From sequence record LC778249.1: DNA of 64,000 bases; one strand, given 5' to 3'. The position numbers were made by a program, and so were the translations under genes. The notes under the pieces are model-generated. The model worked only from the letters and a program-made list of their open reading frames with translations, was not told the origin of the DNA and made no database searches. This document shows, one piece after another, positions 2,182-32,711 of this stretch (the first letter of the stretch is position 1; every line of letters begins with the position of its first letter).

Positions 2182-2226
2182 GATAATCGCGCTTAAACCG
2201 CTGATTAACACGTTTAAGCCTTCTCG

Positions 2227-2435: not shown

Positions 2436-2470
2436 GGTACTAAATAGACTTGCTAGTAAAGGAGTTTATA

Positions 2471-2794: not shown

Positions 2795-2814
2795 ATTTTG
2801 TTAGTGCGCTATGA

Positions 2815-2890
2815 AGCGGGATGGAGAAGTCTGGAATCTCGTTAGCCTCATAAGCTAAAGGTCGGTGGTTCAAATCCACCTCCCGCTTCA
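2815..2890 (+). tRNA. Initiator-like tRNA-Met(CAT), no encoded CCA
   Basis: fMet-like D arm TGGAGAAGTCTGGAATCTCG, CTCATAA loop, T arm GGTGG-TTCAAAT-CCACC; acceptor extended by 12 bp (2803-2814/2888-2899). Confidence 0.8.
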
Positions 2891-2912
2891 TAGCGTACTA
2901 AATAAAGAATAC

Positions 2913-3004
2913 GGAGACGCTGCAATGACGGTGGTATTGCACCAGACTGTAAATCTGGCCCCACAGGGTGAACATTGTAGGTTCGAATCCTACCGGCTCC
3001 ACCA
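2913..3004 (+). tRNA. tRNA-Tyr(GTA)
   Basis: CCAGA-CTGTAAA-TCTGG, long variable arm, CCA. Confidence 0.9.
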
Positions 3005-3033
3005 AATTTAATAAGTCAATAACGAGGTATACA

Positions 3034-3120
3034 ATGATTCCGATAGTGTTCCTATGTGATAATGATCACAGTGGTTGTCACCCAAACGGATGTTATTATT
3101 GTCCACATTATTACTTGTAG
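3034..3120 (+). CDS. 28-aa Cys/His-rich micropeptide (not in ORF track)
   Basis: GAGGT RBS then MIPIVFLCDNDHSGCHPNGCYYCPHYYL*. Confidence 0.55.
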   Translation: MIPIVFLCDNDHSGCHPNGCYYCPHYYL

Positions 3121-3127
3121 TTTAAAC

Positions 3128-3202
3128 GGTGCATTAGTATAATGGCTATTATTCGTGACTGTCTATCACAGGATACGGGTTCGATTCCCGTATGTACCGC
3201 CA
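3128..3202 (+). tRNA. tRNA-Asp(GTC)
   Basis: GGTGCAT/ATGTACC, CTGTCTA loop, G73 + CCA. Confidence 0.92.
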
Positions 3203-3268
3203 GTTTCTGCCTAGCAGGAAAGAGAACTTACCCGACAAAGTTTAGTTCTTAGCTCTTTGATTATCGCT

Positions 3269-3416
3269 GGATTCACTACAGCAAAACCTAAAATACAAAA
3301 CAAACTCTACTATTAAATGGATAGCACTCCTTTACTTCGGTAGTTGGATGTGCGGCTGAGAGGGAACAGCATATAAAAGTAACGGCGGGTTAGTCACCGC
3401 TCCCATATGTGAATCC
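3269..3416 (+). ncRNA. Large motif RNA (helix + TACAGCAA)
   Basis: GGATTCAC/GTGAATCC terminal helix, TACAGCAA 3277-3284, several internal hairpins. Confidence 0.55.
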
Positions 3417-3486
3417 GAAGACTTGCGATAACCACTTGCAAATAGTGGTTATTCTAATGTATAATCACGATTGTATATTAGAATTT

Positions 3487-3562
3487 GGGGATATAGCTCA
3501 GTTGGGAGAGCACTAGCCTTGCAAGCTGGGGGTCGTGGGTTCGAGTCCCATTGTCTCCACCA
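3487..3562 (+). tRNA. tRNA-Ala(TGC)
   Basis: GGGGATA/TGTCTCC with G3:U70, CTTGCAA loop, CCA. Confidence 0.95.
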
Positions 3563-3572
3563 AATTTAAATC

Positions 3573-3648
3573 GCGTGATTAACTCAGTTGGTAGAGTGTC
3601 AGCCTTCCAAGCTGTTCGTCGCCCGTTCGAGTCGGGTATCACGCTCCA
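3573..3648 (+). tRNA. tRNA-Gly(TCC)
   Basis: GCGTGAT/ATCACGC, CTTCCAA loop, U73 + CCA. Confidence 0.93.
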
Positions 3649-3655
3649 AATTAAC

Positions 3656-3730
3656 GCGCAGGTAGCCAAGCGGTAAGGCAAGTGATTGCAAATCACTTTA
3701 TCGTCTGTTCGATCCAGATCCTGTGCTCCA
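3656..3730 (+). tRNA. tRNA-Cys(GCA)
   Basis: GCGCAGG/CCTGTGC, TTGCAAA loop, U73 + CCA. Confidence 0.93.
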
Positions 3731-3746
3731 CATTGAGAAATAATTT

Positions 3747-4172
3747 ATGAGCGCACCTAGTTATGCGCTGTTCATGAAGAACGGCGATTGTGTCGGGAAC
3801 TGCTTTATCAACTGCGGTTGGTGGCATGATGAACCAAGAACACTGAGACAGATTATCCGGTATACCGAAACCGATGAATGTCCTATCGACTATGATAGTG
3901 TAATCGCGTATGGTGTTACCTATAGCAATGACTTGGAATTCGAGCTTCTGAAAGCAGAAGAAACGGAAGCTAAGTTGAGAGAAATTGCTGAAAATAAGCG
4001 TAAGCAAAGTTGGGAAGATTTACATCAGAAGATGATCGAACGGACGAAACCGATTGATCGAATGCTTCCTGAATTGATCGCTGCTGAGATATGCGGAGTT
4101 CAGCCAATGACTGGTCATGTTCCTAACGTTTTTTCGTTGAAGGTAGTTTACGGCGATGATATTTCTTGCTAA
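3747..4172 (+). CDS. Protein with C-terminal T4 gp23 Gol-peptide-like segment
   Basis: DRMLPELIAAEICGVQPMTGHVPNVFSLKVVYG resembles T4 gp23 RRAIPNLIAFDICGVQPMNSPTGQVFALRAVYG. Confidence 0.75.
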   Translation: MSAPSYALFMKNGDCVGNCFINCGWWHDEPRTLRQIIRYTETDECPIDYDSVIAYGVTYSNDLEFELLKAEETEAKLREIAENKRKQSWEDLHQKMIERTKPIDRMLPELIAAEICGVQPMTGHVPNVFSLKVVYGDDISC

Positions 4173-4548
4173 GATACGTTATATGAAAAGCGAATACATG
4201 GGTTCATCTAAATCATTCGATACCATTAAACTGGTAGAAGCAGAAGATGCAGACGAGGCCGATAGCAAAGTTCGCGAATATTACAACGACAAAAGTTCAG
4301 ATTATGGCACATATTATTCCGTTCTGGACGTTTCGATAGAAGAACCGATTAGGTGATTTATGAGTAAAGAATCCGAATTGAGATTCACGCTGAAAGAACT
4401 GAAACGAATGGTTCAATTGGCGGAAGAGAATAACACAACACTGGTTGATGTCAAATATACCTCAGGGTGTATCGGCTCAATCGTCATGGCAAAACCGGTG
4501 TGTAAAGACGGCGAATTCGAATCTGTAACTGATGTCGATAGCTGGTAA
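4156..4548 (+). other. Two small hypothetical CDS (4156-4356, 4360-4548)
   Basis: Tandem, closely packed + strand ORFs. Confidence 0.65.
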
Positions 4549-4557
4549 AAAGATTAT

Positions 4558-4631
4558 AGGGGCGTAGCAAATCGGTTATGCGGCGGATTCCAAATCCGTT
4601 GAGGTGGGTTCGACTCCTACCGCCCCTGCCA
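4558..4631 (+). tRNA. tRNA-Trp(CCA)
   Basis: AGGGGCG/CGCCCCT, TTCCAAA loop, CCA. Confidence 0.93.
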
Positions 4632-4637
4632 AACAAC

Positions 4638-4713
4638 GCGCCGTTAGCTTAGTTGGTAGAGCATCGGACTTTTAATCCGAGGGTCGATGGTTCGAGTCCA
4701 TCACGGCGCACCA
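4638..4713 (+). tRNA. tRNA-Lys(TTT)
   Basis: GCGCCGT/ACGGCGC, CTTTTAA loop, CCA. Confidence 0.95.
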
Positions 4714-4737
4714 AACAATCGCTTTGAAAGGTGAAAT

Positions 4738-4842
4738 CGCTAATGCTTTTAAGTGCAATGGGATAGCTTCTCGAAAGTCGGGATATAGATTGCCCCGTCG
4801 GTATTGATTTCATGATAGGTTCGATTCCTATCCTTAGCGTCT
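4738..4842 (+). ncRNA. tRNA-like RNA with a T arm but no D or anticodon arm (T4 species 1/2 genre)
   Basis: GATAGG-TTCGATT-CCTATC followed by CTTAGCG, pairing with CGCTAA at the 5' end. Confidence 0.5.
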
Positions 4843-4848
4843 AATTAT

Positions 4849-4923
4849 CTCGGGTTAGGCAAGTGGTATGTCGCCTGGTTTGGGACCAGGTCGTCGAGTG
4901 TTCGATTCACTCACCCGAGACCA
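4849..4923 (+). tRNA. tRNA-Pro(TGG)
   Basis: CTCGGGT/ACCCGAG, CCTGG-TTTGGGA-CCAGG, CCA. Confidence 0.93.
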
Positions 4924-4929
4924 AATAGA

Positions 4930-5176
4930 GAATGCCAACTATGTCCTAGGAAACTTAGTTGGAAGTCCAGCTGAAGGTCCCTCTCTCGCGAATAGCGATG
5001 ATGCACCAGGAAGGGGCGAATGATTCACTTGTGGGTCATTTCAAAGAGTTCTGATAGAGTTCTTTGAATTGATTCATGCGTTGCATCGCATTGAATGAAG
5101 TGGGGTTACACAAAGTAGGATTAAGTTACCGAAACGATACGACGATGACCCACGTTAAACGTTAATATTCGTCCCA
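4930..5176 (+). ncRNA. Candidate large structured RNA
   Basis: Nested helices 5013-5021/5167-5175, 5031-5039/5145-5153, 5040-5047/5061-5068, 4935-4941/4956-4962; no ORF. Confidence 0.5.
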
Positions 5177-5182
5177 GTTTAT

Positions 5183-5258
5183 AGGGGTATCGCCAAGTTG
5201 GAAAGGCAACGGATTTTGATTCCGTCATTCGCTGGTTCGAGTCCAGCTACCCCCGCCA
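5183..5258 (+). tRNA. tRNA-Gln(TTG)
   Basis: ACGGA-TTTTGAT-TCCGT, T arm GCTGG-TTCGAGT-CCAGC, G73 + CCA. Confidence 0.92.
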
Positions 5259-5280
5259 ATTTCAACTAAGAGAATTTATC

Positions 5281-5445
5281 ATGATTGAATCTGTTATTGT
5301 GAAAATGCGTAAAGAAGCTGAGAGCTTGCGTAATGATACCCTCGTTAGTATGCGTGAAGGCGTTACTAATGACATCGTTGCTAAGTATCTTGACAAATAC
5401 GCCGACGAGTTGGAAAGAGCTGTTATGAATCCCATTGCTCTTTAA
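5281..5445 (+). CDS. 54-aa hypothetical protein (below ORF-track cutoff)
   Basis: MIESVIVKMRKEAESL... open frame between tRNAs. Confidence 0.55.
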   Translation: MIESVIVKMRKEAESLRNDTLVSMREGVTNDIVAKYLDKYADELERAVMNPIAL

Positions 5446-5532
5446 ATTATCAAACGGGATGCCGATGCGCGTGTGTAGCCAGATCGTAATGATCAAGATT
5501 CACGATGTCATAGAGGCATGACAAAGAATTAA

Positions 5533-5626
5533 GGAAGGTCAACCCGATAGCCGGCGACGGGAGCGGTCTTGAAAACCGTCGAGGGTTAACAGCCCCTTGT
5601 GAGTTCGACCCTCACACCTTCCGCCA
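5533..5626 (+). tRNA. tRNA-Ser(TGA)
   Basis: GGAAGGT/ACCTTCC, CTTGAAA loop, long variable arm, CCA. Confidence 0.92.
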
Positions 5627-5672
5627 ATTTAAACTAACCCATACGCGGTAGCGTAAAGGAGAACATCGGTAG

Positions 5673-6107
5673 ATGGAAATGTTAGACATGTGTCGCTGTT
5701 ATGTAGAGGTTGCTAGATACGCAATCAACATGCAACGATCAAAAAAGATTGATCACTGGTCATTTGATCCAGTTGAATATCTGAAACAGCACAGAACGAT
5801 TCACCTTGACTTTGGTCGCGGTACGATGAAGACTAGAGCCGCGTTTGATATCGCACAGGATCACAACGGTGTTCTTGTTACGATTAATCAAGCTCATGCT
5901 AGATGGATTCAGCGTGAAGTTTTCGGTAATACAAAAGGTAAAACCCGAATAACTTTTTCAAAGGGTGCTGTTGCGGAAATCCGAGAAAACAGTTATGATG
6001 TTGTTGTTATCGATGAACCAGCTTTACATAAACCGCATCTGCTAGAAGCGATTTATGATGCTTGTATTGACAAGAAGATTCAAAACATCATACTGATTGG
6101 ACGATGA
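5673..6107 (+). CDS. Hypothetical protein, degenerate P-loop NTPase-like
   Basis: GRGTMKT (imperfect Walker A) and VVVIDEP (Walker B-like). Confidence 0.45.
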   Translation: MEMLDMCRCYVEVARYAINMQRSKKIDHWSFDPVEYLKQHRTIHLDFGRGTMKTRAAFDIAQDHNGVLVTINQAHARWIQREVFGNTKGKTRITFSKGAVAEIRENSYDVVVIDEPALHKPHLLEAIYDACIDKKIQNIILIGR

Positions 6108-6330
6108 TATGAAAATTACCAAAGTAGATATCGAACTGCAATCCCGATTCGTTGACAAAGGCGATTCATACGGATTCGGTACAACTCAATCCGCTGCCAA
6201 GTGTTCTACTGCTCAAATTGAACGACTTCTGAAACTTGGCTTGATTAAGATGTGTCGCGATGTCAAATGCGTTGCACAAAAGGATTTTCGTGGCTTCGTT
6301 AGCAGTGGTACGCACTATTGCAAAGCTTAA
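6097..6330 (+). CDS. Hypothetical protein
   Basis: + strand ORF overlapping the stop of the previous gene. Confidence 0.6.
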   Translation: MDDDMKITKVDIELQSRFVDKGDSYGFGTTQSAAKCSTAQIERLLKLGLIKMCRDVKCVAQKDFRGFVSSGTHYCKA

Positions 6331-6434
6331 AGAAAGAAATCGAGGAAAACGTCAGAGCGTCGTTTGAACTATCTGGACAAAGAGTTACTGATACTCAATG
6401 GGAACAGATTAAACGAGCTGCTGAATATATTAAC

Positions 6435-6522
6435 GGAGAAATGACAGAGAGGCCGAACGTAGCGGATTGCTAATTCGTAGGCCCGCAAGGGTCCGTGGGT
6501 TCGAATCCCACTTTCTCCTCCA
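6435..6522 (+). tRNA. tRNA-Ser(GCT)
   Basis: GGAGAAA/TTTCTCC, TTGCTAA loop, long variable arm, CCA. Confidence 0.92.
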
Positions 6523-6528
6523 AACAAC

Positions 6529-6612
6529 GCGGATGTGGCGAAATTGGCAGACGCACTAGATTTAGGTTCTAGCGCCATAGGCGTGTCGGTTCGAGTCCGA
6601 CCATCCGCACCA
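6529..6612 (+). tRNA. tRNA-Leu(TAG)
   Basis: GCGGATG/CATCCGC, CTAGA-TTTAGGT-TCTAG, CCA. Confidence 0.95.
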
Positions 6613-6620
6613 GATAAATA

Positions 6621-6645
6621 AAAGGGAGCTTCGGCTCCCTTTTTT
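6621..6645 (+). terminator. Rho-independent terminator
   Basis: GGGAGC-TTCG-GCTCCC followed by T run. Confidence 0.9.
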
Positions 6646-6660
6646 CATAGGAGAATATCA

Positions 6661-7053
6661 ATGCCATCATTTACTGAGTTCAAAGGTAAAGAACAAACTA
6701 AAGCTGTTGGAGAACTCATTTCCAAGCTTCTGAAAAGCGTGGCCTACGTTCATCATCAACACCTAACTACTACCATTTATAGCCGTCACAAAGCTCTTGG
6801 AGAGTATTACGAGGGGCTTCCATCGCTTATCGATAGTTTCGCAGAAAGTTCTATTGCTCGGGGATACGATCAAAGCTTTACTGCCACTCACGCGGAGGTA
6901 GAAGTTGAATTAATGATTGACAACTTCCTACAAGATTGTACTATGGTGCATGAGTACCTAGAGACAAAACGGCATTTCGATCTAGTCAATGCTCTAGAAG
7001 ATATCATGACCTTTATGACTTCAATTAGATATAAATTGAATCTTAAAGGTTGA
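6661..7053 (+). CDS. Ferritin-like four-helix protein (DUF5856-like)
   Basis: HHQHLTT...HKALGEYYEGL..LIDSFAE pattern typical of T4-like phage ferritin-like proteins. Confidence 0.6.
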   Translation: MPSFTEFKGKEQTKAVGELISKLLKSVAYVHHQHLTTTIYSRHKALGEYYEGLPSLIDSFAESSIARGYDQSFTATHAEVEVELMIDNFLQDCTMVHEYLETKRHFDLVNALEDIMTFMTSIRYKLNLKG

Positions 7054-7086
7054 CAATAGCTAAGAGCTGTGTTATCATGGCTCTTA
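7050..7086 (+). promoter_or_regulatory. Early stem-loop promoter
   Basis: TTGACA-N17-TATCAT with TAAGAGC/GCTCTTA inverted repeat around the -10. Confidence 0.75.
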
Positions 7087-7095
7087 TAAATCAAA

Positions 7096-7170
7096 GGCCC
7101 CGTAACATAAGGGTAAATGTGCTCGCCTCATAAGCGAAGAAAAGCGGTTCGAGTCCGCTCGGGGCCACCA
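7096..7170 (+). tRNA. tRNA(CAT), Ile2 (lysidine)-like
   Basis: GGCCCCG/CGGGGCC acceptor resembling bacterial Ile2, CTCATAA loop, CCA. Confidence 0.85.
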
Positions 7171-15154: not shown

Positions 15155-15283
15155 TTGTTGACGCGATTAGCTCAGTGGGAGAGCGCCTCTGATCGCAGAG
15201 AAGTATCGGGACCGGTTCGAATCCGGTATAGTGTGGGCACACCGAGAAACGTCGCTGGTTCGAATCCAGCATCGCGTCAACAA
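15155..15283 (+). ncRNA. Expanded tRNA-like RNA with two T arms
   Basis: 13-bp acceptor-like helix, D arm GCTCAGTGGGAGAGC, T arms ACCGG-TTCGAAT-CCGGT and GCTGG-TTCGAAT-CCAGC; no CCA. Confidence 0.7.
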
Positions 15284-18929: not shown

Positions 18930-21401
18930 TTCATAAAGGTTTATCGGATCCTATGATGAATCTGATAAATTACATGAGTTCCCCGTTAAAAGGCTATGTA
19001 TTTCTGGGATTTGTCCCATTAGGAAAAGACGAATATTGGGGAATCAAGAGCGGTGATCGAAAGTTCGCCGCTTGTCATTTATCGGATGAACAATCCAACT
19101 TTCCACGTTCTGACGATGAACAAAAAGAAAGAAAACTGATTGACAGTGGGAATCATGTTGTTTTATACTTAAAGGGTAATGACAACATCAGCTATTTGAA
19201 GCGTTTCCGCAGTAAGGATGCGGCAATCAAATGGTTCTACAAAACAGAGGAGTTTACCCCTGATAATTTTGCTTGTTGGGTAAACAGTTGAGGCGCAAAT
19301 GATAGTTGAAAATTTTCGACCAGTAGATTATCTTTGTAAAGTTGGTGAAGTAACTCGCGACTATGCAGAGGTAACGAAAGAAGTCTATGAAAAAGTAAAG
19401 GCGATGGCGAAAGATCACGACATTACTTGTCTGTGTTCGCCTCCCATTGAGTATCTTTACAGTCACGATATGAAAGATCCTGATTGTGAGATTCTTGGTA
19501 AAGCGTTTCTGTATCAATCAGAACGACGCCCGCCAATGGAAAACGAGCCGAATAAGTATCTGATTATGCAAGATCAACCGAAACCTTACAAACTCGTTAC
19601 CGTTATGAATAAAGGACTCACACGCGAACAACGCGCCGAGTATAAAGAACGTGTAAATTCTGGTTATTACAAATTGGAGAATCTGAAAAATGTTTTATCG
19701 TGAAGGCAATATTAAGGACATACCGGTTGAACTAATCGAGATCAACAACTTCGATAAACCTTACGAACTGCCGGATCAAGATCTGACGTTCAAAAACTTC
19801 CGTCGTTATGCTCCGATTGGTGGGTCTGGTTACGCGCCGCTGTATATCGCTGAAAGCAATTGCGGTAAAGTGAAACTGACCATGAAACTGCGCGGTATGT
19901 CTGACGTTGAAGCTACCATGATTTATGATGATGGTCGTTATAGTATCCACACCAACAATGTCAAGCGTCTCGGTTTCACTACCAAGCACAACTCTAACGG
20001 TCTGTTTGTTGAGAAAAACGCATATCGTATCGGTGTTGGTGCTCCTCTGCAAGTCGGAGATCAAGTGAATAACCGAAACGGTGTTTGTGAAGTTCTGTTG
20101 ATCACCGATGATAGCGTGATTCTGAAAGACGACAAGAACAAAACCATTCTTGTTCGTAAGAACGACAAGGGTGCAATGAACGCGCACAGCTTCGACTGGC
20201 TGGAAGAATAACAAGAGGGCTTCGGCCCTCTTTGGAGCAACTATGCATTTTGAAACTAAGCACTATCTAAAACATCCAGTTTTGGTAAATCGATTCGCTT
20301 ACATTCTGCGGGTGTTGAACGACTTCTACGGAAAGAACAAGTCTGCCAAAATTCGCGAAACCGAAGGGTTCAAGCAGTTCAAGCGAGATACTTATTGGCT
20401 ATTCACTAAGCTATGTCCAGAACTCACGCAAACACAAGAGTCCGGTATGGTAGAAGAGTTCAGTTATGAAGGGTCCCAACTTTCAATGAAAATTTTCGTG
20501 AAAATAATTCCGAAAAACGAGTTGACATCAAAAACTGACCTGTTAGTATAGCCTCATCAAACGAACTGAGGAACAAATCATGAAAACTACTGCCGAACTG
20601 AAAGCAATGCGAGCTAAACGTGGATTCAAAGACGAAAAAGACGTTTTGATCGAGTCTCACGCTTTCGCACAACGCGCACTGGCACAAGCAGTAATCATGG
20701 AACATGCTGAAAACATGGATTTGTTCCGCAGCAAGATCAAAGTATACGAAGACCGTATTCAACAAATCACTCTGTAAGGATAAATTATGTACTACAATGT
20801 AAGTCAAATCAAACTGCCTCGTGTTAGCGAAGAATATCAACGTCTGGTCGACATGCGCCCTGGTGATACACTGCCGATCGGCGATAAGTCTTATGTTCTG
20901 CTGAATATCGAGCGCAACGGTACCGCAGTTGAGCCCGTTTACAATCTGGAAACCAGCGATCTTCGCGCTTCCATGCGAATCGTAAATGGTCGCGTACTGA
21001 TCACGACTGTAAATAAAGTTACTTTCGAGATCAAAAACGATAGCATCGAAGCTGGTCAACTGGGCTGGGTCAAGCGTGGTGGTTTCTATTCCTATCGTCG
21101 TCGCGTTGTGCTGGAAGAAGGTTACATTCGTGGTCGTCCGCTGCTGGATGGTGATATCTTCGAGATCCACAAAAACAGCGGTCGATTTGGTAACGTTGTC
21201 GCCACTAGCGGCGATCCTGACGAAACCAAGCGTGAATTCATCCTGGTCAGCTTCAACAGCCCGCGTGATGGAAAGCCGTTCGTTGAGACTATGTTCCACA
21301 GTGTAAAAACTGAACAGAACAACTATCAACTCCAGAAAGTTTGTGGTGATATCGTGTATGTGAACAACTACATGGAACAAAATCTGAAACATATCGCTTG
21401 A
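18926..21401 (+). other. Hypothetical CDS (18926-19291, 19299-19703, 19690-20211, 20243-20551, 20580-20777, 20787-21401)
   Basis: + strand ORFs with RBS; terminator 20213-20233. Confidence 0.6.
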
Positions 21402-21462
21402 CATAAAAGTGATATATAGTAAACTAAAGCCACTCAATGAGTGGCTTTTTTATTGGAGAAAT

Positions 21463-22362
21463 ATGAACTTTATCTTAAATCTTATGATGATTCAATCATC
21501 TAGTGCAGCAATCATAGGTGATTGTGTTGGTAGCTTCAACGAGTTCAATACCGGCAAGAAGATTCGCCGAATTAACATCGAGACGCTGAAAGCAGAGAAA
21601 AACAGCTTTGATCACGATTACGGTTACTTTACCGATGATACGACTTGCGCACTAATCACGATGAACAATTATCAGGATGGCAAATTCGACATCGCTGGAA
21701 TTAAGCGTGATATCCGTCGCTGGGTCAATCGTGGTGCGTTTTCGTCAACTGGTGAATGCTTCGATATTGGTACTAGCACATACAACGCTATAATGCGGGA
21801 CAAGCCAATCACAGACGCGAGCAAAGGTTGCGGTAATGGTGCACTTATGCGATTCTATCCTGTTGCGTTTGCGACGTATGGGAAAAGCAAAGAAGAGATC
21901 GAAAGTGTTGTGCGAGAACTGACCGAGATTACGCATCCTATCGAGTTCGTCGTGGAGTATTCTCTGCTGTATGTTCGTATCATGCATCGAATCATCGACG
22001 GAGCGAGCAAGGAACAGCTCCAGAATGAGTTTGGCTTGTTCTTTGATAATGCAGACTGCAAGCCTACGGGGTATGTCAAGGATTCGCTCACCATCGCTTG
22101 GAGAACGTTTATGCTCTTTGATAAGAAGCAGAACGGGATCTTTTACATAGCGAATCTCGGCTATGATAGCGATACCGTTGCGAGTATCTATGGCTCAATG
22201 ATTGGTGCTTATTCAGTGTTACACCATAGCGGCGATTTTGATCCTTGGCTTCATGAGAACATCAAGCGACCAGATCTGATCAATAGCATATCGGATAAGT
22301 TCATGGAACAGGTACTCGGTATAAATAATGAACAATCTAGCGAATCGAAGATAGCGCCGTAG
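21463..22362 (+). CDS. ADP-ribosylglycohydrolase (ARH/DraG family)
   Basis: GDCVGS.NEF, YFTDDT, GNGALMR, GYDSDTVASIYGSMIGA. Confidence 0.92.
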   Translation: MNFILNLMMIQSSSAAIIGDCVGSFNEFNTGKKIRRINIETLKAEKNSFDHDYGYFTDDTTCALITMNNYQDGKFDIAGIKRDIRRWVNRGAFSSTGECFDIGTSTYNAIMRDKPITDASKGCGNGALMRFYPVAFATYGKSKEEIESVVRELTEITHPIEFVVEYSLLYVRIMHRIIDGASKEQLQNEFGLFFDNADCKPTGYVKDSLTIAWRTFMLFDKKQNGIFYIANLGYDSDTVASIYGSMIGAYSVLHHSGDFDPWLHENIKRPDLINSISDKFMEQVLGINNEQSSESKIAP

Positions 22363-22461
22363 GCGCTAACTCATTGATATCTAACGAAAAGACAAAGTAG
22401 ATTCTCATTAAAGTATTATAAGAGATTTTATTTTGTCTTTCTAGCTCGCTTCGCTCGCGGT
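22343..22461 (+). repeat. ~120-bp dispersed repeat, copy 1
   Basis: Near-identical to 62002-62121; GAAAAGACAAA/TTTGTCTTTC inverted repeat and GCTCGCTTCGCTCGC. Confidence 0.9.
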
Positions 22462-22466
22462 GTTCC

Positions 22467-22474
22467 ACTAAATA
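22467..22474 (+). promoter_or_regulatory. T4-like late promoter variant ACTAAATA
   Basis: Same octamer intergenic at 113, 476, 2439, 2897 and 51972; resembles T4 TATAAATA. Confidence 0.6.
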
Positions 22475-22505
22475 ATCGTATATCAGTTCACTAATGAGGA
22501 ACAAA

Positions 22506-25500
22506 ATGTTAACAACTAAACAATTATTCGAAAGTCAAAACGATCATGCGTATAATCGTTTTCTGACTGAAAATACTTTATACGACAAAGATACCAAAGT
22601 TACATTCGTTAATGATGAAACTTCTATCATTAATGCATTTGCATTTAACTTCCTTGGTATCCTGGGTAGCTTCAATGCTGCTAGACAGATCAACGATCAG
22701 ACCACTATCAAATTCATCCAGCGTTATTTCAAGACTGATGCCCAGTTGAGAATCAGTAACATCGATGACCGAAATCACAATATTTCACTGATCGTTAAGC
22801 TGATGCATGATAAAGATATGTTTATCAACTCTGCCAAGGTAAACGAAATGACCCGTTTCCTTGTTCTGTGTAAATCAGGCGTGGTTAATACAGTTGATGA
22901 CGATATTGTCCGTGCCTGGGTTGCGAACATCAAAAACAGCGCAATCATGAAAGCAGATCCAAAACTGCGTGACGTTCTACTAAAATTCAAAAACAGTGCA
23001 ATTTCCATGATTGATGCGTCAAAGGAAATGCGCCGTCAACGCAACAAACATACCGAGATCTCTACAGATTATTGGGATGTCAGTCGCCGCATTCGATTCA
23101 AGAATATGGACACTGTTACTACCGGTACTGGTGCTGGTGACTCACAGGATAACGATACCGCGATTCCACAAACTACAACTGGTGATGATACCAACGCTGT
23201 TACCGACGTTGTTGGTGATGCTCCTGTTGCGCCAGAGTCCGTTGCTGAGCCTGTCAAGCCCGGTTATCTGACTTATGATCACGAAGGTGGTTTTGCTGAT
23301 GCTGTATTGTCTATCGTTGGTCAGCATATTGCGGAGAATAAATCCGGTATTTCTGGAATGAATACGCTTGACCCGAACACATATACTTCCGGGTCCGACT
23401 TCTGGCCAACCGGATTCGAATTCGAATTGGTAGACCCAGCACAGGAAGAAATGTTTATCCGGTATCGCGAACGCTTCACCGACGTTATCACAAAACTAGC
23501 TGGATACGGTCGTCAATTTAAGTTGCATTCAAGCTCAATTGACAATATCAGTTTCGACGTAACCAATTACAAGATGAACGAGGACACATTCTTCATTAAG
23601 AATCGTTCCGATTTCATTAATCTGTATAAGCGTTATGGCGTATACGGAGAGAATAATCCGTTTACTGGCGCAATTGAACTATATACCGTCCTATATGCTA
23701 TCGCTGGTAGCAAAGTAGATAACAAATCCTGGTTGTTTGGCTTTAGTGCCGATGATATCATGTATGAGTTGTTCGGATCGGCACTTGGTAGCAAAATGGA
23801 AGCGTTGTCTTTTGGCATGACAACTGACATGGTTATCACACTAGCGATTAGACTGGACAACGCACCAGACGAGCGCCGAATTGCAATGGTAGACGGATTG
23901 GAAGTTACTTTTATTTCCGCCACAACTTCTCTGATGTCTCAGCAAGGTGTGGATATGAAGTTAAATCCTCTGTTTGGCTCCGAATCGGACGTGTTTATTG
24001 GAACAAAAGCCATTACTACTATGGTGAATATCTTCAATAAAGAATGTGCGAGCATTTATCCGACGATCCCTAGTCTACCGACATGGGGAGCTGGAACAAA
24101 GCCGGTTCATCAATATATGAATATGATCCGTTATATGGCACGTGATTATATCACCAACGCCAATTTCAGTTTCATCGAAGAATATTGGACCAAGAAGAAT
24201 TATCTTGAGGATAAAGAATTCGTTTACGAAGTTAAACAAGTTATGAATTCTAGTCCGGCGCAGATGGTTTATACTCCATTGCGTATTCTGCCTTCTATTG
24301 CGATTGCTACCCTTGCTAAAGCAATGATTCGCTATGCTAAGTTGGTTGGTGATAATTTGCCGATTGAAGCTCTGAAACGTTCAATGGAAAAGTTCCCGGA
24401 AGTTGCAAATGAAGTTCGAGACATGATTATTCAGAAGATCGATAATCCTGCCGAAGTTTATCAGGCAATGCAGCTTATGCCAGCTTATCTTGAATCCGCA
24501 ACCGGAAATGAATTGAAGAATCGCATTTCTTATTTGCTGACTAACATCAAGACTAAAGACGGACTGAGACGATTTGTTAGTCGTTCTGGACAATGCGATC
24601 CACACGTTAGAGTTCCGCTGTTGCTGATGTCTTATGCTAAGTTGGGCAATGATATGGAATCCAGTTATATTGGTGATTTCGCTTATGATTTCGTCAACAA
24701 GATTGATTTTGACGATGAATCCGCGGCTGAGTTTATGCGTCTTGAAGTTGCACACGGCTTTAAGTTCATGAACAAAGAAAATCTGATGGGCATTCGTCGT
24801 CGTGATGATAAAGCGAAAGCACAGCAAACATTGGTTGATATCATGTTTAACGGTATGAAAGCTAATCCAGCGGTTGCCAATGCTTTCTATGAAAACATGG
24901 ACGACTATTACAAGGGTAAAGTTCGGACTACTTTGACTGGTATTAACTTCATTTACAAGCAAGTTCACGGCGGTCCAATCAACATGTTTGATACGCCAAA
25001 TATGGCTCGCGTTAAAAAGATGTTTGAGTTTAACGAGATTGATCCAGATGAACTGGTTAAATCGGCAAAAATACGCGCCAAGAAAGGCGAAACGTTCAGT
25101 GATTATATCGCTCGCGTTGAAGCCGCTGCGGATACAACCGTTGTTGTTCCTCCTCCTGCTGTTGTCGATGATAACATCACTGATGAACAGAAATATTTGA
25201 TTGGCAAGCATCTGGTTGATAATTATTACGCTGGTAAACACGGTAACACTTATCCGTTGATTCATAAATCATTTACTGTTAATATGACTTATCCAGAGTA
25301 TAACGAGTTCTTGAAGCAACAAGAAGCGGAAGGAAAACTGGAGCAAATTGTGCCATGTTTCCACGGAACAGGCGGTATTGCTGCTAACATGGTTCTTCGC
25401 TATGGATTCAAGATTATTCCAAGTAAGGATAAATCTGTTGTTGGTCGTATGCTTGGTGATGGATTGTATTTCAGTAACAAGATTGACAAGATCCTACAAT

Positions 25501-26057
25501 ACGTGAGTAACGAAGGTTATGGCCGTCATTCTGGCACACGTGGCTATGTATTCGAAATGGAATCTATTCTTGGCGAGCGTCGTAAGGACTATCGTTCTGC
25601 TGGTGTTCCGAACCCAACTGATCATCACGGCGTTAGATCTCCGGAATGGGCGGTGTTCGATCCTAAGAAACAAATCAAGGTGCTGAAATGCTATGAGGTT
25701 GAGCTTAACACGTTCAGCAAGTACAAAGAGCATCAATCAAAAATGAAAGGTAGTCTGGTTGAAAGTAACCGGATGAAGTTTGGAGAAATGCTGACAGAAG
25801 CAAAACGCGCAAGCGTCAAAGACTACGCGATTTATACTTTCTATGACGGTATGATCCCGATGCGTAAAAACGGTGTGATTGAGTATGTTGATCCAAAAGA
25901 GTTCAATCCAGCAACTGGCGTTGAGCTTGAATACGGCGACGATTCACACGTTACCGTTTACGTGCCGGCTACTCGTACCGAGTACAATCGGTATTCTATG
26001 TGTAAGAAAATCAAGGGTAAGGACTTGGAGAAATTCTTGTCCATCGCTTGTAAGTAA
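22506..26057 (+). CDS. Large, probably virion-packaged ADP-ribosyltransferase with PARP-type (H-Y-E) domain
   Basis: FHGT...GRMLGDGLYF...LQY...SPEW at ~25350-25650; late promoter upstream; L-x-E sites (QLFES, SLVES, MLTEA); upstream in-frame ATG at 22494. Confidence 0.8.
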   Translation: MLTTKQLFESQNDHAYNRFLTENTLYDKDTKVTFVNDETSIINAFAFNFLGILGSFNAARQINDQTTIKFIQRYFKTDAQLRISNIDDRNHNISLIVKLMHDKDMFINSAKVNEMTRFLVLCKSGVVNTVDDDIVRAWVANIKNSAIMKADPKLRDVLLKFKNSAISMIDASKEMRRQRNKHTEISTDYWDVSRRIRFKNMDTVTTGTGAGDSQDNDTAIPQTTTGDDTNAVTDVVGDAPVAPESVAEPVKPGYLTYDHEGGFADAVLSIVGQHIAENKSGISGMNTLDPNTYTSGSDFWPTGFEFELVDPAQEEMFIRYRERFTDVITKLAGYGRQFKLHSSSIDNISFDVTNYKMNEDTFFIKNRSDFINLYKRYGVYGENNPFTGAIELYTVLYAIAGSKVDNKSWLFGFSADDIMYELFGSALGSKMEALSFGMTTDMVITLAIRLDNAPDERRIAMVDGLEVTFISATTSLMSQQGVDMKLNPLFGSESDVFIGTKAITTMVNIFNKECASIYPTIPSLPTWGAGTKPVHQYMNMIRYMARDYITNANFSFIEEYWTKKNYLEDKEFVYEVKQVMNSSPAQMVYTPLRILPSIAIATLAKAMIRYAKLVGDNLPIEALKRSMEKFPEVANEVRDMIIQKIDNPAEVYQAMQLMPAYLESATGNELKNRISYLLTNIKTKDGLRRFVSRSGQCDPHVRVPLLLMSYAKLGNDMESSYIGDFAYDFVNKIDFDDESAAEFMRLEVAHGFKFMNKENLMGIRRRDDKAKAQQTLVDIMFNGMKANPAVANAFYENMDDYYKGKVRTTLTGINFIYKQVHGGPINMFDTPNMARVKKMFEFNEIDPDELVKSAKIRAKKGETFSDYIARVEAAADTTVVVPPPAVVDDNITDEQKYLIGKHLVDNYYAGKHGNTYPLIHKSFTVNMTYPEYNEFLKQQEAEGKLEQIVPCFHGTGGIAANMVLRYGFKIIPSKDKSVVGRMLGDGLYFSNKIDKILQYVSNEGYGRHSGTRGYVFEMESILGERRKDYRSAGVPNPTDHHGVRSPEWAVFDPKKQIKVLKCYEVELNTFSKYKEHQSKMKGSLVESNRMKFGEMLTEAKRASVKDYAIYTFYDGMIPMRKNGVIEYVDPKEFNPATGVELEYGDDSHVTVYVPATRTEYNRYSMCKKIKGKDLEKFLSIACK

Positions 26058-26145
26058 TAAAAGGCACCTTCGGGTGCCTTTTTTGTTGACAACGCATTTC
26101 AACCTGATAATATGTCCACATCGAAACAAACAAGAGAACTACATC

Positions 26146-26752: not shown

Positions 26753-28801
26753 ATGACTAATCAAGAAAAGATGCAAGCTCTGGTAGAATACATCAAGCCT
26801 CGTATCGACTCTCGGATTGCAGAATATGTCCGTGTTCGCAGTCTGAAATCTGTCGGTGAATATACCGTAGAGATCATCATGGTCGGTGCAAAGCAAGGTT
26901 GTTCTGATGTTGAATACTTCAACGCTCGTTGGGCGCATTTCATGCTTCACGACGGTGACGACAAATTTACCGCGCTATGTGGTGACTGCAAGTGGAAATC
27001 CGGTGTGAAATTCCCAGTTCTTCGCAATCAGAAATCTCTGGAACTGGCATGTGATAAAGTGATTGCCTTTGTTAACGCTAACGTCGAGATTTTCAAGGAA
27101 TGTTATGGGATCTAACTTAAATGTTTTTGATGTAATCGCCATCTCTGCCTGTGGGATATTGATGGCGATGATCGCAATCATGATAATCGAAGAACTGCCA
27201 AAGTTTATTCGCGTAAGCCGAGATATGCATTCGATTAACATGGTAATCACTAGAACTGGTATACAACTTGAACGGGTAAATGTCGTTCAGTTTGTTTTCA
27301 AGTCTAGCACTCGAACGAGTCGCCCGTTGCTTGCTTCCGAAGTTTATAGCTTTTGGAAAGCGTGTGATAAAGGCGTCAACTTCGAACAACACTCAACACC
27401 AATAGAGGAATAAAATGGCACTGTTCATTATCTCCCTTAGTATCTTGTCTTGTATCGCGGTAGTGGTTGGTTTGTTTATCGGCATCGATCAATACCGTAC
27501 CAAGAAGCGTAAACGTCGAGTTAACTGGGTATTGGAGCACTATCGCGAAGTTCGCGAAGTTCTGCAAGAGAAAGGCATTCGGCTCGAAATGTATAACAAT
27601 GGAATTATTACCGATTTCGCGGGTGCCGCGTCTTGGTTCCGATTCATTGATAACGTTGAGGGTGCGCAAACTCGCAATCTTACCATTCATGAATTCTATG
27701 ATCTCATGATGCAAGTTCAGGGAACAAATAACATTCGCAAATATCTATTTGCGCAACGTTACATCTACAGGCGTTTTAATGTCAAATAACTATCAGGACA
27801 TTAGCGGACCTTCGAAAGAAATAGTCCTGCAAAATTTCCAGAAGTTGATAGACGGACAACGCTTTGATGAAAAATATATTCCGGTATATGTGACAAATGT
27901 CACAAAAATAATGGACAAACCACTTGTAGTTCCTAGACCAGTTGTGATAAAATCTCTCTCAGATTCAAATGATATGAGGAGTGATGACAAATGGTGGAGA
28001 AAGGACTAAACGCAATCTGGTGTTTGCTCATTATTCTGAACATCGTAATATGGGCCATGATCGGGAGCAACGACTTCATGATCATGGTCTTAAAGGCGAT
28101 TTACCCAATTTTAGTGTGGATGCAAATATGAAAAAGTTTGGAATTCTAGCAATTGCTCTGTTGCTGACTGGCTGTGATACTATCACACAAGAAACAACCA
28201 ATGGTTATCAGATGGTGCCTGGCCTTGATGGCTGTAAGGTGTTTCATCTTCGATCTAAAACCGAACAAAATCTGTATGTGACTCGTTGTCCGACCACTAC
28301 CTCAACTCACTGGGACATATCAAACGGTAAGAGTACCAGCCATTACGACTCGACTGCCGATAACTATGATCCTAATGCCGAAACATTGGAACAAGCAATC
28401 GAACGTCTGAACACCAATCTGGCTGAACTCTACAAGCAAAAGGCTATGCAATGATTATCACAGTTGATCCGTTTGAGTTATCGGTTGGTATAATGGTCGT
28501 CGCTGGCACGATTGCGTTGATCTGCAATGTTGCTAAACATGCGTTGGCGCGTGACTCAATGGCAAAAAGTCTGGTTTATATCAATGCTAATTTGGCAGAA
28601 TTTGGCCTGTCTATCAAGATCGACAAACGAAAGTATGTGATTACCGATGGAAACCGAATCACCCGTCCTATGAATGCATATGATACTGAATATTTTCTGA
28701 AACAGCTAGGCGAAGAAAGAACACAGGTAATGGATTGCTTTAGGATTCACTCTGGCGTTATTCCAAGTCCTGTTAACTTCATGAGAAAAGGTGATAAATG
28801 A
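26753..28801 (+). other. Hypothetical CDS incl. membrane proteins and lipoprotein (26753-27115, 27415-27789, 27780-28009, 28128-28454 lipobox LTGC, 28451-28801)
   Basis: + strand ORFs, hydrophobic N-termini. Confidence 0.6.
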
Positions 28802-29751
28802 AAACTATGATGAAAACCGTATTCGGCTCGCATCTGTACGGGCTGAGTACACCAACTTCGGATCGCGATTACAAAGGGATCTTTATTCCCACTAAGCGGG
28901 AGATCATTCTGGGTGGTCGAGAAGTCTACAACGAAAGCACTGGTGGTAAAGGTAAAAACGGCGCCGATGATATCGATACCGAAATGATGTCTTTGCGTCA
29001 GTTCATCAAGCTGGCGAGCAAAGGCGAAACTATGTGTATCGATATGTTGCACAGTAACCAGCTCTTGGAAACTTCTCCTTATTGGGAAGTAATTCAGCAA
29101 AATCGGTCTATGTTTTACACGACTCGTATGGATGCATTCTTAGGCTACTGCCGAAAACAAGCTACCAAGTACGGTGTTAAGGGTACTCGACTAGCTGCAC
29201 TCGAACGAGTGATGACCGTTATCTCTAACATTCCTCAGTCGGACATGAACTATCGTCTCCGTTATTTTGTTGATCGTCTGCCAACTGATGAATTCACATT
29301 CTCTGGTACCGAAGTATCCCGTACCGGTGAAACTGTCGAGTTCTATGAGGTGCTGGGTCGCAAGTATCTGTATGGAATCAAGATCACCGAGTTTATCCAG
29401 CAAGTCCAGAAGATTTGGGAAGAGTATGGTGATCGTGCTAAACGTGCGAAAGAGGAAGTCGGTGTAGACTGGAAAGCGTTGAGTCATGCTATCCGAGGCG
29501 GTGAACAACTGCTTGAGATCTATCGGACTGGAGATCTGAAATTCCCGCTGAAACATCGTGAATTTATTCTTGACGTTAAGCTAGGAAAGCGTAGTCTGGT
29601 AGACGAAGTTAATCCCTATCTCGAACAGCTTATGAACGATGTTGAGAAAGAGGTTGTGATCGCTCGCAAAAACGGTATGCGCGAAACTGTGAATCGTGAA
29701 TACTGGGACGATTTTGTCTATGAGGTCTATCTCGCGGAGCTGCTGTCATGA
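28798..29751 (+). CDS. DNA pol beta-fold nucleotidyltransferase (RlaP/Nuc-transf-like)
   Basis: GSHLYGLSTPTSDRDYKGIF (GS..YG......D.D) and DWKALSHAIR. Confidence 0.85.
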   Translation: MKTMMKTVFGSHLYGLSTPTSDRDYKGIFIPTKREIILGGREVYNESTGGKGKNGADDIDTEMMSLRQFIKLASKGETMCIDMLHSNQLLETSPYWEVIQQNRSMFYTTRMDAFLGYCRKQATKYGVKGTRLAALERVMTVISNIPQSDMNYRLRYFVDRLPTDEFTFSGTEVSRTGETVEFYEVLGRKYLYGIKITEFIQQVQKIWEEYGDRAKRAKEEVGVDWKALSHAIRGGEQLLEIYRTGDLKFPLKHREFILDVKLGKRSLVDEVNPYLEQLMNDVEKEVVIARKNGMRETVNREYWDDFVYEVYLAELLS

Positions 29752-31268: not shown

Positions 31269-32711
31269 ATGAACGTATTTAAAACCAACCTGGCAGTAAC
31301 TACCGACTCTTACAAAATCAGCCATCCGTATCAGTTCCCAGCTGGGACCGATGCAATCAGTCTTTACGCTGAGCCGCGTGTGGACGATGATGTAATGATC
31401 TCCGGTTTGCATTTTGTTGCGCGTACTCTGGAGCAGGGTGTGACCGTCGCTGACGTCAACCGCGCTAACATGTTGTTCAAATCCCACTTCGGTCGCGACA
31501 TGTTCGCATATGAAATGTGGATGAATATTGCAACCAACGGCGGCAAACTTCCGGTTAACCTGTATGGTGCGAAAGAAGGTCAAGTAATCCCTGGTCGTAA
31601 CGCGACTATGGTAGTTGAAATCTTCGGACCGAACTACAGTCTCGGTGGTCACCTTGAAACTTTCCTGTTGCGTGGTCACTGGTATCCCAGTACCGTTGCT
31701 TCTATCAGCTTCAAGATCAAGAAACTCGTTAAAAAGTATCTGAAAGAAACCTCCGATCTGACTGGTGCCGATTTCGATTTCGTACTGAAAACCCGTCTGC
31801 ATGACTTCGGTGCTCGCGGTGCGACTTGTGAACAAGCGGCAAAGCTGGGTGGTCTGGCACATCTGATCAACTTCATCGGTACCGATACCGTCGAAGCTCT
31901 GATTATGGCACAAGACCTGTATGATCTGGCACATGATATCGCTGTTGGTATCAGTATTCCGGCTCGCGAACACACCACTACCATTTGCTACGGTGATGAA
32001 GGTTTGCTGACTCCTGAACAGGAAGATGAAGCATTCTGGAACAGCATTCGTAACTGGGGTGATGGTGTTTACGCGATTGTGGCTGACTCCATCGACTACA
32101 AATCAGCGGTAGATCGTCTGACCACTGGTGAGTTCAAGCGCGAAATTCTGGCTCGCGGCGGTACTTGCGTGATTCGTCCTGACTCTGGTGACATGTTTGA
32201 TAATATCGGATATGCTCTGGAAACTATCGCGAAGAACGTCGGTTTCACTGTGAACAGCAAGGGTTACAAAGTCCTGCATGGTAGCTACCGTGTTATTCAG
32301 GGCGACGGCCTGAGTTCCGACAAAGATGTTGAAGCCTGTCTCGAGTTCATCAAAGTTCTGGGTTACAGTATCGAAAACGTCGCTTTCGGCATGGGTGGTG
32401 GTCTGTTGCAGAAATGCGACCGTGACACTCAGAAATGGGCTTACAAATGCTCTGCGATTCGCGTTAACGGTGTCTGGCGTCGTGTGCGTAAGAACCCGAA
32501 AGATGCAGCGTGGAAAGCTTCCAAAGCCGGTCGTCTGCGTCTGGTGAAAATTGACGGTGAATACAAGACTGTTGATATTCTTGATCCGCAGTTCGCACAG
32601 TACGAACACAACAACGAATATGTCCAGTATCTGCGTGAAGGCACTTGCACCCATGTTTATAACATGAGTGTGTTTGAAGAAGCCCGACTCCGCAGCGACG
32701 AACAAGCTTAA
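31269..32711 (+). CDS. nadV: Nicotinamide phosphoribosyltransferase (NAMPT)
   Basis: TDSYKISH, RLHDFGARG, SIPAREH, VIRPDSGD, VIQGDG, FGMGGGLLQK, RDTQKWAYKCS. Confidence 0.95.
   Translation: MNVFKTNLAVTTDSYKISHPYQFPAGTDAISLYAEPRVDDDVMISGLHFVARTLEQGVTVADVNRANMLFKSHFGRDMFAYEMWMNIATNGGKLPVNLYGAKEGQVIPGRNATMVVEIFGPNYSLGGHLETFLLRGHWYPSTVASISFKIKKLVKKYLKETSDLTGADFDFVLKTRLHDFGARGATCEQAAKLGGLAHLINFIGTDTVEALIMAQDLYDLAHDIAVGISIPAREHTTTICYGDEGLLTPEQEDEAFWNSIRNWGDGVYAIVADSIDYKSAVDRLTTGEFKREILARGGTCVIRPDSGDMFDNIGYALETIAKNVGFTVNSKGYKVLHGSYRVIQGDGLSSDKDVEACLEFIKVLGYSIENVAFGMGGGLLQKCDRDTQKWAYKCSAIRVNGVWRRVRKNPKDAAWKASKAGRLRLVKIDGEYKTVDILDPQFAQYEHNNEYVQYLREGTCTHVYNMSVFEEARLRSDEQA

Follow-up and report, generated by a model that had tools for sequence, protein, structure and literature searches.

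Why a T4-like phage should encode an eraser and a writer of ADP-ribose side by side is the question raised by a two-gene unit of Aeromonas phage phiWae14, studied here in a window of 64,000 nucleotides of its record LC778249.1 (window position equals record position minus 62000; coordinates are those of the window unless the record is named). ADP-ribosylation is central to the conflict between phages and bacteria, as seen in Alt, ModA and ModB, in DarT and CmdT, and in NAD+ depletion and its reversal. The first gene of the unit (21463-22362, + strand; ATG at 21463, stop at 22362) encodes an ADP-ribosylglycohydrolase (ARH) of 299 residues and 33.8 kDa, assigned to Pfam PF03747 and phrog_6572, and the second (22506-26057, + strand, stop codon 26055-26057 included; CDS BES53129.1 / phiAS5_ORF0265) encodes a protein of 1183 residues and 134 kDa, placed in phrog_18612 (function unknown), with a catalytic domain of the PARP type. 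An ARH gene directly upstream of an H-Y-E (His-Tyr-Glu) protein of about 1180 residues is what a first-pass annotation of the window had described, and the PF03747 match and the 1183-residue open reading frame (ORF) confirm it, the ARH gene being intact. We consider the PARP-type protein to be a second head-packaged, protease-trimmed and injected ADP-ribosyltransferase of this phage, a reading to which we give an even chance.

Window bases 21400-26100 are 100% identical to phiWae14 LC778249.1, and phiAS5, a T4-like member of the Straboviridae (genus Chrysonvirus), is 99.7% identical to phiWae14 here. The PARP-like domain and the gene pair are already in print as computational observations. The orthologue of phage Aeh1 appears as a PARP-like protein in papers of 2005 (PMC1266365) and 2014 (PMC4245714), a 2023 review takes it for a putative functional PARP-like protein whose function is unknown (PMC10789625), and a 2022 survey both counts PARTs among the most frequent viral ADP-ribosyltransferases (ARTs) and describes an ART-ARG pair in "certain Aeromonas phages" (PMC9503650). 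What lies at the heart of the finding had thus been observed before, and its new part is the putative packaging signals; the literature search found no experimental work on the PARP-type protein family, and neither a transcript map nor a biochemical datum for any of its members.

The PARP-type gene begins at ATG 22506, preceded by a GAGGA ribosome-binding site at 22496-22500, a start that is annotated in GenBank and common to all orthologues. An ATG at 22494 was rejected as the start, as it has no ribosome-binding site and the orthologues all begin at the equivalent of 22506.

The PARP-type domain and the protein around it

The catalytic domain occupies residues 903-1083 (25212-25754, + strand), as supported by the structural model, Foldseek, profile matches and a conserved triad. 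Pfam PARP (PF00644) matches the protein at 19.8 bits (E 6e-4), below the gathering score of 26.7, and precomputed PF00644 matches exist for the relatives P0003-P0006; the protein is therefore a divergent member of that family and not a non-member. Residues 879-1183 are modelled by AlphaFold with a mean predicted local distance difference test score (pLDDT) of 91, and the comparison with PARP1 proposed in the first-pass annotation returned PARP1, PARP2 and PARP3 catalytic domains as all of the best 50 Foldseek matches in the PDB (E 1e-8 to 7e-8, probability 1.00; template-modelling (TM) score at most 0.53 on ART-only targets). A search with the family profile matched PARP1 at 2.5e-4 among solved structures, and the H, Y and E residues align to the motifs of PARP1/2/3 at an identity to PARPs of merely 15-19%. 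The strings on which the domain had been recognized are all present, namely FHGT (H953), GDGLYF (Y988), LQY (Y999) and SPEW (E1047). In an alignment of 82 relatives, G954, Y988, K995, Y999, E1047 and Q1056 are invariant and H953 is kept in at least 90%.

The assignment to the PARP/diphtheria-toxin clade, as opposed to the R-S-E clade of T4 Alt, ModA and ModB, also holds. No match of the Alt/ModA/ModB type (ADPrib_exo_Tox, Alt-like) was found on the protein in PHROG or Pfam, and from the PARP1/2/3 fold together with the conserved triad it follows that the domain belongs to the H-Y-E clade; it is this combination of triad and fold that lifts the catalytic signature beyond chance. The likeness to the eukaryotic enzymes extends to a spacing of 11 residues from Tyr to Tyr and to a conserved Lys four residues before the second Tyr, but the phage protein has none of the WGR, zinc-finger, BRCT or helical regulatory domains of PARP1/2/3 in a Pfam search, and the architecture around its catalytic domain is wholly different. 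In PARP1-type enzymes the Glu is needed for chain elongation, yet it is not sufficient. The Glu of the putative elongating site is present in the phage domain, from whose sequence the choice between poly- and mono-ADP-ribosylation is not readable.

A word-indexed search of named databases returned few relatives (8 matches), and a profile built from these gathered 560 representative clusters from metagenomes at E<=1e-3 and 288, clustered at 50% identity, at E<=1e-30. Nearly all family members in the 288 clusters are 1000-1500 residues long, and the same build recurs throughout, with an N-terminal domain in 136 of 154 family representatives, a C-terminal domain in 149 and both of these together with the PARP domain in 131, forming one constant architecture. 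The protein opens with a disordered peptide ending in F-L-T-E, a putative propeptide (residues 1-22, 22506-22571, + strand; pLDDT ~46), followed by the conserved, all-helical N-terminal domain (residues 23-200, 22572-23105, + strand; pLDDT 95-98), which has no Pfam match. A disordered, acidic, Thr/Asp/Pro-rich linker (residues ~201-247, 23106-23246, + strand; pLDDT 31-45), variable in the family and falling in a gap-rich and poorly conserved part of the alignment, leads into a divergent, alpha-helical, solenoid-like body (residues 248-878, 23247-25139, + strand). The model of residues 1-878 as a whole is all helical, at a pLDDT of 84. Beyond the catalytic domain, a second linker bearing conserved L-V-E and L-T-E motifs (residues 1084-1098, 25755-25799, + strand; pLDDT 50-70), a putative C-terminal processing region that includes the string MKFGEMLTE, joins it to a small, conserved, beta-rich C-terminal domain (residues 1099-1183, 25800-26054, + strand; 9.8 kDa, pI 8.5), modelled with confidence as strands and one helix, which has no Pfam match and is a putative propeptide or targeting module.

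Searches with the non-catalytic part returned little. In the PDB, Foldseek matched the solenoid body merely to generic HEAT/ARM proteins (E>3e-3, TM ~0.2), and in a viral structure library the only significant matches of the N-terminal 878 residues were family members. Coat, MuF, portal, tape-measure and internal virion proteins were each rejected as identities for these 878 residues on the lack of a significant PDB or viral-library match and of any Pfam match; a MuF/polyvalent-type protein came at rank 22 of the viral fold search with a non-significant E of 0.06. An early remark that the non-catalytic part distantly resembles viral coat proteins (PMC1266365) was thus not reproduced by fold searches of the PDB and the viral library. 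A fusion of the N-terminal domain to other effectors was likewise rejected, as the word-indexed search gave close family only and the profiles a single architecture.

The Aeh1 PARP-like protein (Aeh1p141 / ORF131c; phage 'PART' family) is an orthologue with 45% identity over its full length and no essential difference, sharing the three conserved modules, the upstream ARH gene, and the intergenic repeat and CTAAATA site discussed below.

Terminal motifs and the Alt homologue of phiWae14

The prohead protease of T4, gp21, has the published motif L/I-X-E (PMC9026906). T4 Alt is cut at ITE-6 and LTE-619, as determined by mass spectrometry, with the loss of 63 C-terminal residues, and is carried at about 40 copies per head and ejected (PMC5694885, PMC9026906); about 44% of phage ARTs occur in head-packaging contexts (PMC9503650). 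The first-pass annotation had pointed to L-x-E sites and to MKFGEMLTE, found as described at 25773-25799 (residues 1090-1098), as signs of such processing. By number alone the sites carry no signal: seven [LI]xE motifs are observed in the PARP-type protein against about nine expected, 83% of shuffled sequences reach seven, and an enrichment was therefore rejected. Three of them are non-random in where they lie and in how well they are conserved. A [LIVMF]xE motif is kept at L20-T-E22 in 73 of 76 aligned relatives, at L1084-V-E1086 in 75 of 81 and at L1096-T-E1098 in 75 of 79, and the other four are not conserved. At the first site P1 is Glu in 74 of 77 relatives, P3 is Leu, Ile or Val in all 77 and P2 is variable; at all three sites P3 is nearly always one of these residues, P2 is free and P1 is Glu, a pattern that thereby matches the published specificity of gp21, and P4 is mostly Phe or Tyr at the E22 and E1098 sites. 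Each of the three falls where the model is of low confidence, at one end or the other of the folded body (residues 1097-1102 have a pLDDT <50), and the peptide ahead of the first site ranges among relatives from 5 residues, in phage Moby, to 22.

The phage also encodes a prohead protease (Peptidase_S77, 1.8e-71), a scaffold protein and gp23/gp24 capsid proteins. Terminal hydrophobic-x-Glu motifs and an encoded protease, two of the features that mark a T4-type prohead-core cargo, are thus both found, a statement about presence and not about cleavage. The processing idea stands in so far as three family-conserved motifs flank the body in disordered segments like the cuts of T4 Alt, and falls in so far as it leaned on the total of L-x-E sites; it may be said to have real, though indirect, support, sharpened to two Alt-like flanking peptides. 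If cut there, the predicted mature enzyme would comprise residues 23-1086 or 23-1098, about 120-122 kDa, and the C-terminal piece released would be the 9.8-kDa basic domain.

When the ORFs of the phage were scanned for a short N-terminal peptide with hydrophobic-x-Glu at its end, the scan picked out the Alt homologue of phiWae14 itself. This protein of 647 residues (phrog_802, 2e-125; Pfam PF03496 ADPrib_exo_Tox, 1e-15) is encoded outside the window on the - strand, the late strand, at record position 221984-223927 (45984-47927 of locus L006), with the motif CTAAATA 32 nt ahead of its gene. Its N-terminus ends ..MLLTE|AS, and beyond its catalytic region, at residues 579-604 and 50 residues from its end, it reads ..LVE..(11 residues)..IMTE|AKK.., to which the PARP-type protein offers the parallel ..LVE..(9)..MLTE|AKR... 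The pattern [LIMF][LIM]TE[ANS] occurs 5 times against 1.7 expected in the 64,277 residues of phage ORFs, with two of the five in each of the two transferases. The two enzymes are otherwise unrelated: homology between the PARP-type protein and the phage's own Alt was rejected, with a BLASTP E>0.5 and nothing in common beyond the short terminal strings, and phiWae14 thus carries two unrelated ADP-ribosyltransferases. The likeness to T4 Alt would be one of logic, in that a late promoter precedes an NAD+-using enzyme held between a short N-terminal and a longer C-terminal peptide, each ending in hydrophobic-Thr-Glu (PMC5694885, PMC9026906), whereas Alt belongs to another catalytic clade (R-S-E, PF03496), the PARP-type protein has no detectable homology to it and packaging is in its case a proposal.

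One further gene of the window, at 52241-52807, encodes a protein of 188 residues (phrog_17629, function unknown) that opens with a 10-residue peptide ending in hydrophobic-x-Glu, and is a candidate internal head protein with a propeptide of the capsid-targeting type. It is the second gene of a two-gene unit (51973-52807) headed by a CTAAATA at 51973.

Transcription of the pair and the weighing of packaging

In the part of the window that holds the pair every gene lies on the + strand, the strand of early genes, and the structural late genes of phiWae14 lie on the opposite strand at record 10.9-49.8 kb. The first-pass annotation had assigned opposite timing to the two genes, with an early promoter before the ARH gene and a late site before the PARP-type gene. 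The late site is upheld, with a change of motif. CTAAATA lies at 22468-22474 (+ strand), 31 nt before the start codon and within the octamer ACTAAATA at 22467-22474, and is the late motif of this phage. The late-gene block has 17 copies of it on the late strand and 2 on the other, standing 20-60 nt before late genes that head intergenic gaps, and in Aeh1, Ahp1, pf16 and the metagenomic contig P0006 the orthologous gene has the motif 23-40 nt ahead of it, so that it is kept upstream of the gene in five lineages. In the P0006 contig it directly follows a terminator, as does gATAAATA in Moby. The motif is not enriched in the window (7 found against 7.9 expected). Given the strand bias and the recurrence ahead of orthologues, late transcription of the PARP-type gene is, as a prediction, well supported by sequence.

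The canonical T4 late motif TATAAATA was considered as the late promoter and rejected, being absent from both the late-gene block and the upstream region in Aeh1 and within chance; its sole copy in the window (22320-22327) falls inside the 3' end of the ARH gene and is probably meaningless. Four of the seven CTAAATA copies of the window (114, 477, 2440 and 2898) lie in its tRNA region, where a cluster of 20 tRNA genes occupies 594-7170; an isolated tRNA-Ala gene follows at 15161-15235, and all 21 tRNA genes are on the + strand.

Ahead of the ARH gene stands a sigma-70-like promoter candidate (21398-21425, + strand) with TTGACA at 21398-21403, a spacer of 16 nt and TAAACT, matching the consensus at 10 of 12 positions. 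It is followed by an intrinsic terminator hairpin that closes the upstream unit (21426-21448, + strand; 10-bp stem and T-run, -14.0 kcal/mol, z -4.9), which overlaps the predicted start site; a transcript begun there would be without the hairpin's 5' arm. In Aeh1, too, the ARH gene is preceded by a promoter and then a hairpin, the promoter equivalent being TTGATT-17-TACAAT. The phage has a strong early-promoter family marked by an A-tract, TTGAC, an extended -10 and CCACATC, of which the window holds 13 copies (8706, 16053, 20502, 26056-26125, 26420, 32713, 34273, 36718, 39775, 53598, 55496, 56028 and 58327). The ARH promoter has neither the A-tract nor the extended -10 TG nor the CCACATC start region, and so the early-type label is right as to its TTGACA-16-TAAACT, sigma-70-like character and wrong if taken to place it in this family.

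Three copies of the family are fused to an identical GGCACC-TTCG-GGTGCC terminator, and one of these terminator-promoter cassettes (family D6) bounds the pair downstream. The unit is closed by the intrinsic terminator at 26063-26084 (+ strand; GGCACC-TTCG-GGTGCC and T-run, -15.4 kcal/mol, z -4.7), so that its two genes lie as one unit between terminators at 21426-21448 and 26063-26084, and the next unit begins with a strong early-type promoter at 26086-26113 (+ strand; TTGACA, 16 nt, TAATAT, extended -10 TG), a member of the early family. Such copies resemble the mobile promoter/stem-loop cassettes of other T4-type phages.

Between the two genes lies a structured intergenic repeat (22343-22470, no strand assigned) of two hairpins (-37.5 kcal/mol, z -4.0). 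The repeat, of about 100-130 nt, combines a short GC hairpin with a long one rich in AT and sits in intergenic stretches, with a second copy in the window at 62002-62129, others at record ~23746-23843, 141018-141094, 166423-166531 and 211293-211390, and 7 places in the genome altogether; the genomes of Aeh1, Ah1 and avDM12 hold 8-9. It matches no Rfam family. Its role as a late-promoter cassette was rejected, since copies occur in both orientations and ahead of sigma-70-type as well as late-type sites.

Several observations weigh against late timing, packaging or both. No terminator-like site was found between the ARH and PARP-type genes, and early read-through is possible; opposite timing is therefore not established by sequence. 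The P0007 and P0008 loci have no late motif, and their PARP-type gene comes directly after replication-type genes, without an intergenic gap. L/I-x-E is very short and no more frequent in the protein as a whole than chance predicts, and motifs with a conserved Glu could be structural. The pattern common to this protein and Alt was drawn up post hoc, and the pairwise alignment by itself is non-significant (E = 3), for which reason the terminal strings that the two share are suggestive only. The PARP-type gene lies among early-strand genes and not in the head module. To our knowledge, a cargo of 121 kDa would be larger than any T4 internal protein. No structural relative could be recognised for the N-terminal 878 residues, and Pfam and PHROGs gave no MuF, portal, polyvalent-protein-associated or other known head-anchoring domain. 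In this the protein also departs from the MuF-fused and polyvalent virion effectors, which it otherwise resembles in its large size, its several domains, its ART effector at the C-terminus and its predicted delivery with the DNA (PMC9503650); it has a single enzymatic domain and none of their MuF, portal or polyvalent domains. No virion proteome for any family member was found in the literature, the papers on pf16, Ps15 and an Ochrobactrum phage being without one.

The size of the protein, the missing anchoring domain and the lack of a structural-module neighbourhood would all suit a late cytoplasmic enzyme that is not cargo at all but works within the cell that makes it, with phage proteins, host proteins or nucleic-acid ends as substrates and with Glu motifs that are structural. 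The late-promoter evidence is silent on packaging, and the PARP clade includes nucleic-acid modifiers (PMC8883491; PMC9503650). Against such an enzyme stand the two termini, each of which bears a cut motif of the T4 Alt type in a disordered segment, with the protease positions fixed and the intervening one free (PMC5694885), and the same strings at equivalent places of the phage's own Alt homologue. We regard it as unlikely.

The glycohydrolase, the NAD+ genes and the meaning of the pair

The ARH is a clear member of its fold family (PF03747, 1.3e-33, 117 bits against a cut-off of 26.2; phrog_6572, 1e-110), with Lmo0067, a Thermus ARH, Tri1, DraG and ARH3 as solved relatives and the acidic metal-site motifs ..TDDT.. 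and ..DSDT.. aligned. Its best NCBIfam matches are Tri1 (76 bits against a cut-off of 490) and DraG (57 against 337), both below the equivalog cut-off. The nearest named families are thus arginine-specific, yet the ARH is a member of neither, and its specificity is not fixed by these matches.

Adjacency of the two genes is kept in the phiAS5, PX29/AsFcp and Aeh1/Ah1/avDM12 lineages and was not seen elsewhere. An ARH occurs in 13 of 39 phage records with the PARP-type domain and is absent from the other 26, namely phages of Stenotrophomonas, Xanthomonas, Ochrobactrum and Lysinibacillus, Pseudomonas phage pf16, Ralstonia phage RSP15 and Aeromonas phage Ahp1; conversely, 16 of 29 phage records with an ARH, namely Cronobacter and Citrobacter phages, Erwinia/Serratia jumbo phages and Bacillus phage G, have no PARP-type protein. 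No eraser of recognisable fold was found beside the PARP-type gene in pf16, Moby, Ahp1 or the P0006-P0008 contigs. The conserved co-occurrence and adjacency expected of a toxin-antitoxin-like ART-ARG pair are thus not seen, and the PARP-type writer clearly does not need the ARH eraser. The reversible writer-eraser switch proposed in the first-pass annotation is weakened by this distribution and by the arginine-type affinities of the ARH, and did not hold up as an obligate pairing; at least as plausibly, the ARH may serve the Alt-type enzyme or counter foreign transferases.

The pair has nonetheless been read in print, for the Aeromonas phage ART-ARG pair, as toxin and antidote (PMC9503650), with a PARP-type enzyme that harms cell or phage proteins and an ARH as its dedicated antidote in the manner of DraT-DraG. 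The genes are neighbours on one strand between two terminators, their adjacency is kept in the phiAS5, PX29 and Aeh1 lineages at 45-74% protein identity, and the order of antidote first with its own promoter fits a protective role. In DraT-DraG and Tre1-Tri1, too, an ADP-ribosyltransferase gene adjoins one for an ARH fold, and the phage ARH is closest to Tri1 and DraG, but the pairing seen in phiWae14 is not conserved across the family of its writer. The DraT-DraG and Tre1-Tri1 writers are arginine-directed and not of the PARP clade. Partnership is limited to one Aeromonas clade, with neither an ARH nor a recognisable nearby eraser in pf16, Moby and other Stenotrophomonas phages, RSP15, Xanthomonas phages, Ahp1 and P0006-P0008, and with an ARH in Cronobacter, Citrobacter and jumbo phages that have no PARP-type protein. 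The nearest named families of the ARH, moreover, act on ADP-ribosyl-arginine, a product that PARP-clade enzymes do not usually make. A dedicated antidote is, on this balance, improbable.

The same distribution lends itself to a pair of independent neighbours in a plastic early region, where the ARH would be a stand-alone arginine eraser directed at the phage's own Alt/Mod marks, as a temporal reset, or at toxins of the host or of competitors, as counter-defence. The best named relatives of the ARH, Tri1 and DraG, are arginine-specific, the phage's Alt homologue is of the R-S-E type, which targets arginine, each of the two genes is widespread without the other, and orphan erasers of T4-like phages that act against ADP-ribosylating defences are documented for the NADAR fold (PMC11825919). 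Against this stand an adjacency stably inherited in three diverged Aeromonas phage lineages and a single terminator-bounded unit that holds both genes, and the Tri1 and DraG matches fall far below the equivalog cut-offs; we hold independence to be conceivable but rather doubtful.

The wider neighbourhood of the PARP-type gene fits an NAD+-consuming enzyme. Genes for NadV, NatV or an NMNAT-like cytidylyltransferase lie within about 3-5 kb of it in phiWae14, Aeh1, Ahp1 and Moby, and in the P0007 and P0008 contigs an NAD+ salvage gene is next to or near it. Downstream of the phiWae14 pair, an RlaP-like nucleotidyltransferase gene (28798-29751) is followed by that of the nicotinamide phosphoribosyltransferase NadV (31269-32711), which together with a NatV-type NMN adenylyltransferase/Nudix gene (record 203905-204957) gives the phage a complete NAD+ salvage route. 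The P0007 contig (locus L007, 14363-18989; also L008) shows, downstream, genes with weak Hint/intein-splicing Pfam matches and then a SegE-type GIY-YIG endonuclease gene.

The gene structure, fold, catalytic residues, motif conservation and promoter motifs, with a protease and an Alt homologue present, are observed, and from them we infer timing, packaging, cleavage, injection, target and ARH substrate as follows. The ARH, an active-looking DraG/Tri1-like enzyme, would be made from its own sigma-70-type promoter, and the PARP-type gene would be transcribed from CTAAATA as a gp55-type late promoter. The PARP-type protein would be built into the prohead core late in infection, as is T4 Alt; the gp21-type prohead protease would then trim it after E22 and after E1086 and/or E1098, and the mature enzyme would stay in the head until it is injected along with the DNA. 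As soon as the next infection begins, it would carry out NAD+-dependent ADP-ribosylation of a host or defence target, and the ARH produced from the incoming genome may remove ADP-ribose marks, be they those of the PARP-type enzyme, of the co-resident Alt-type enzyme or of host toxins.

If the protein is not packaged, it remains the putative PARP-like protein of the literature beside an eraser in a few Aeromonas phages. The phage PARP-clade writers are a large family of 288 clusters that is uncharacterised, and head cargo of the Alt kind, if true, would add to the injected takeover enzymes that are known, make the role of a bacterial-world PARP open to test and explain the nearby NAD+ salvage genes. 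Speculatively, T4-like phages of several proteobacterial hosts may inject a second, PARP-clade transferase of about 120 kDa beside Alt, loaded and released by way of Alt-like terminal peptides that the protease removes; were it to elongate chains or to modify the ends of nucleic acids, a PARP-type writer delivered by the virion would be on record in bacteria for the first time, to which the Aeromonas clade would add a genome-encoded eraser that resets its marks.

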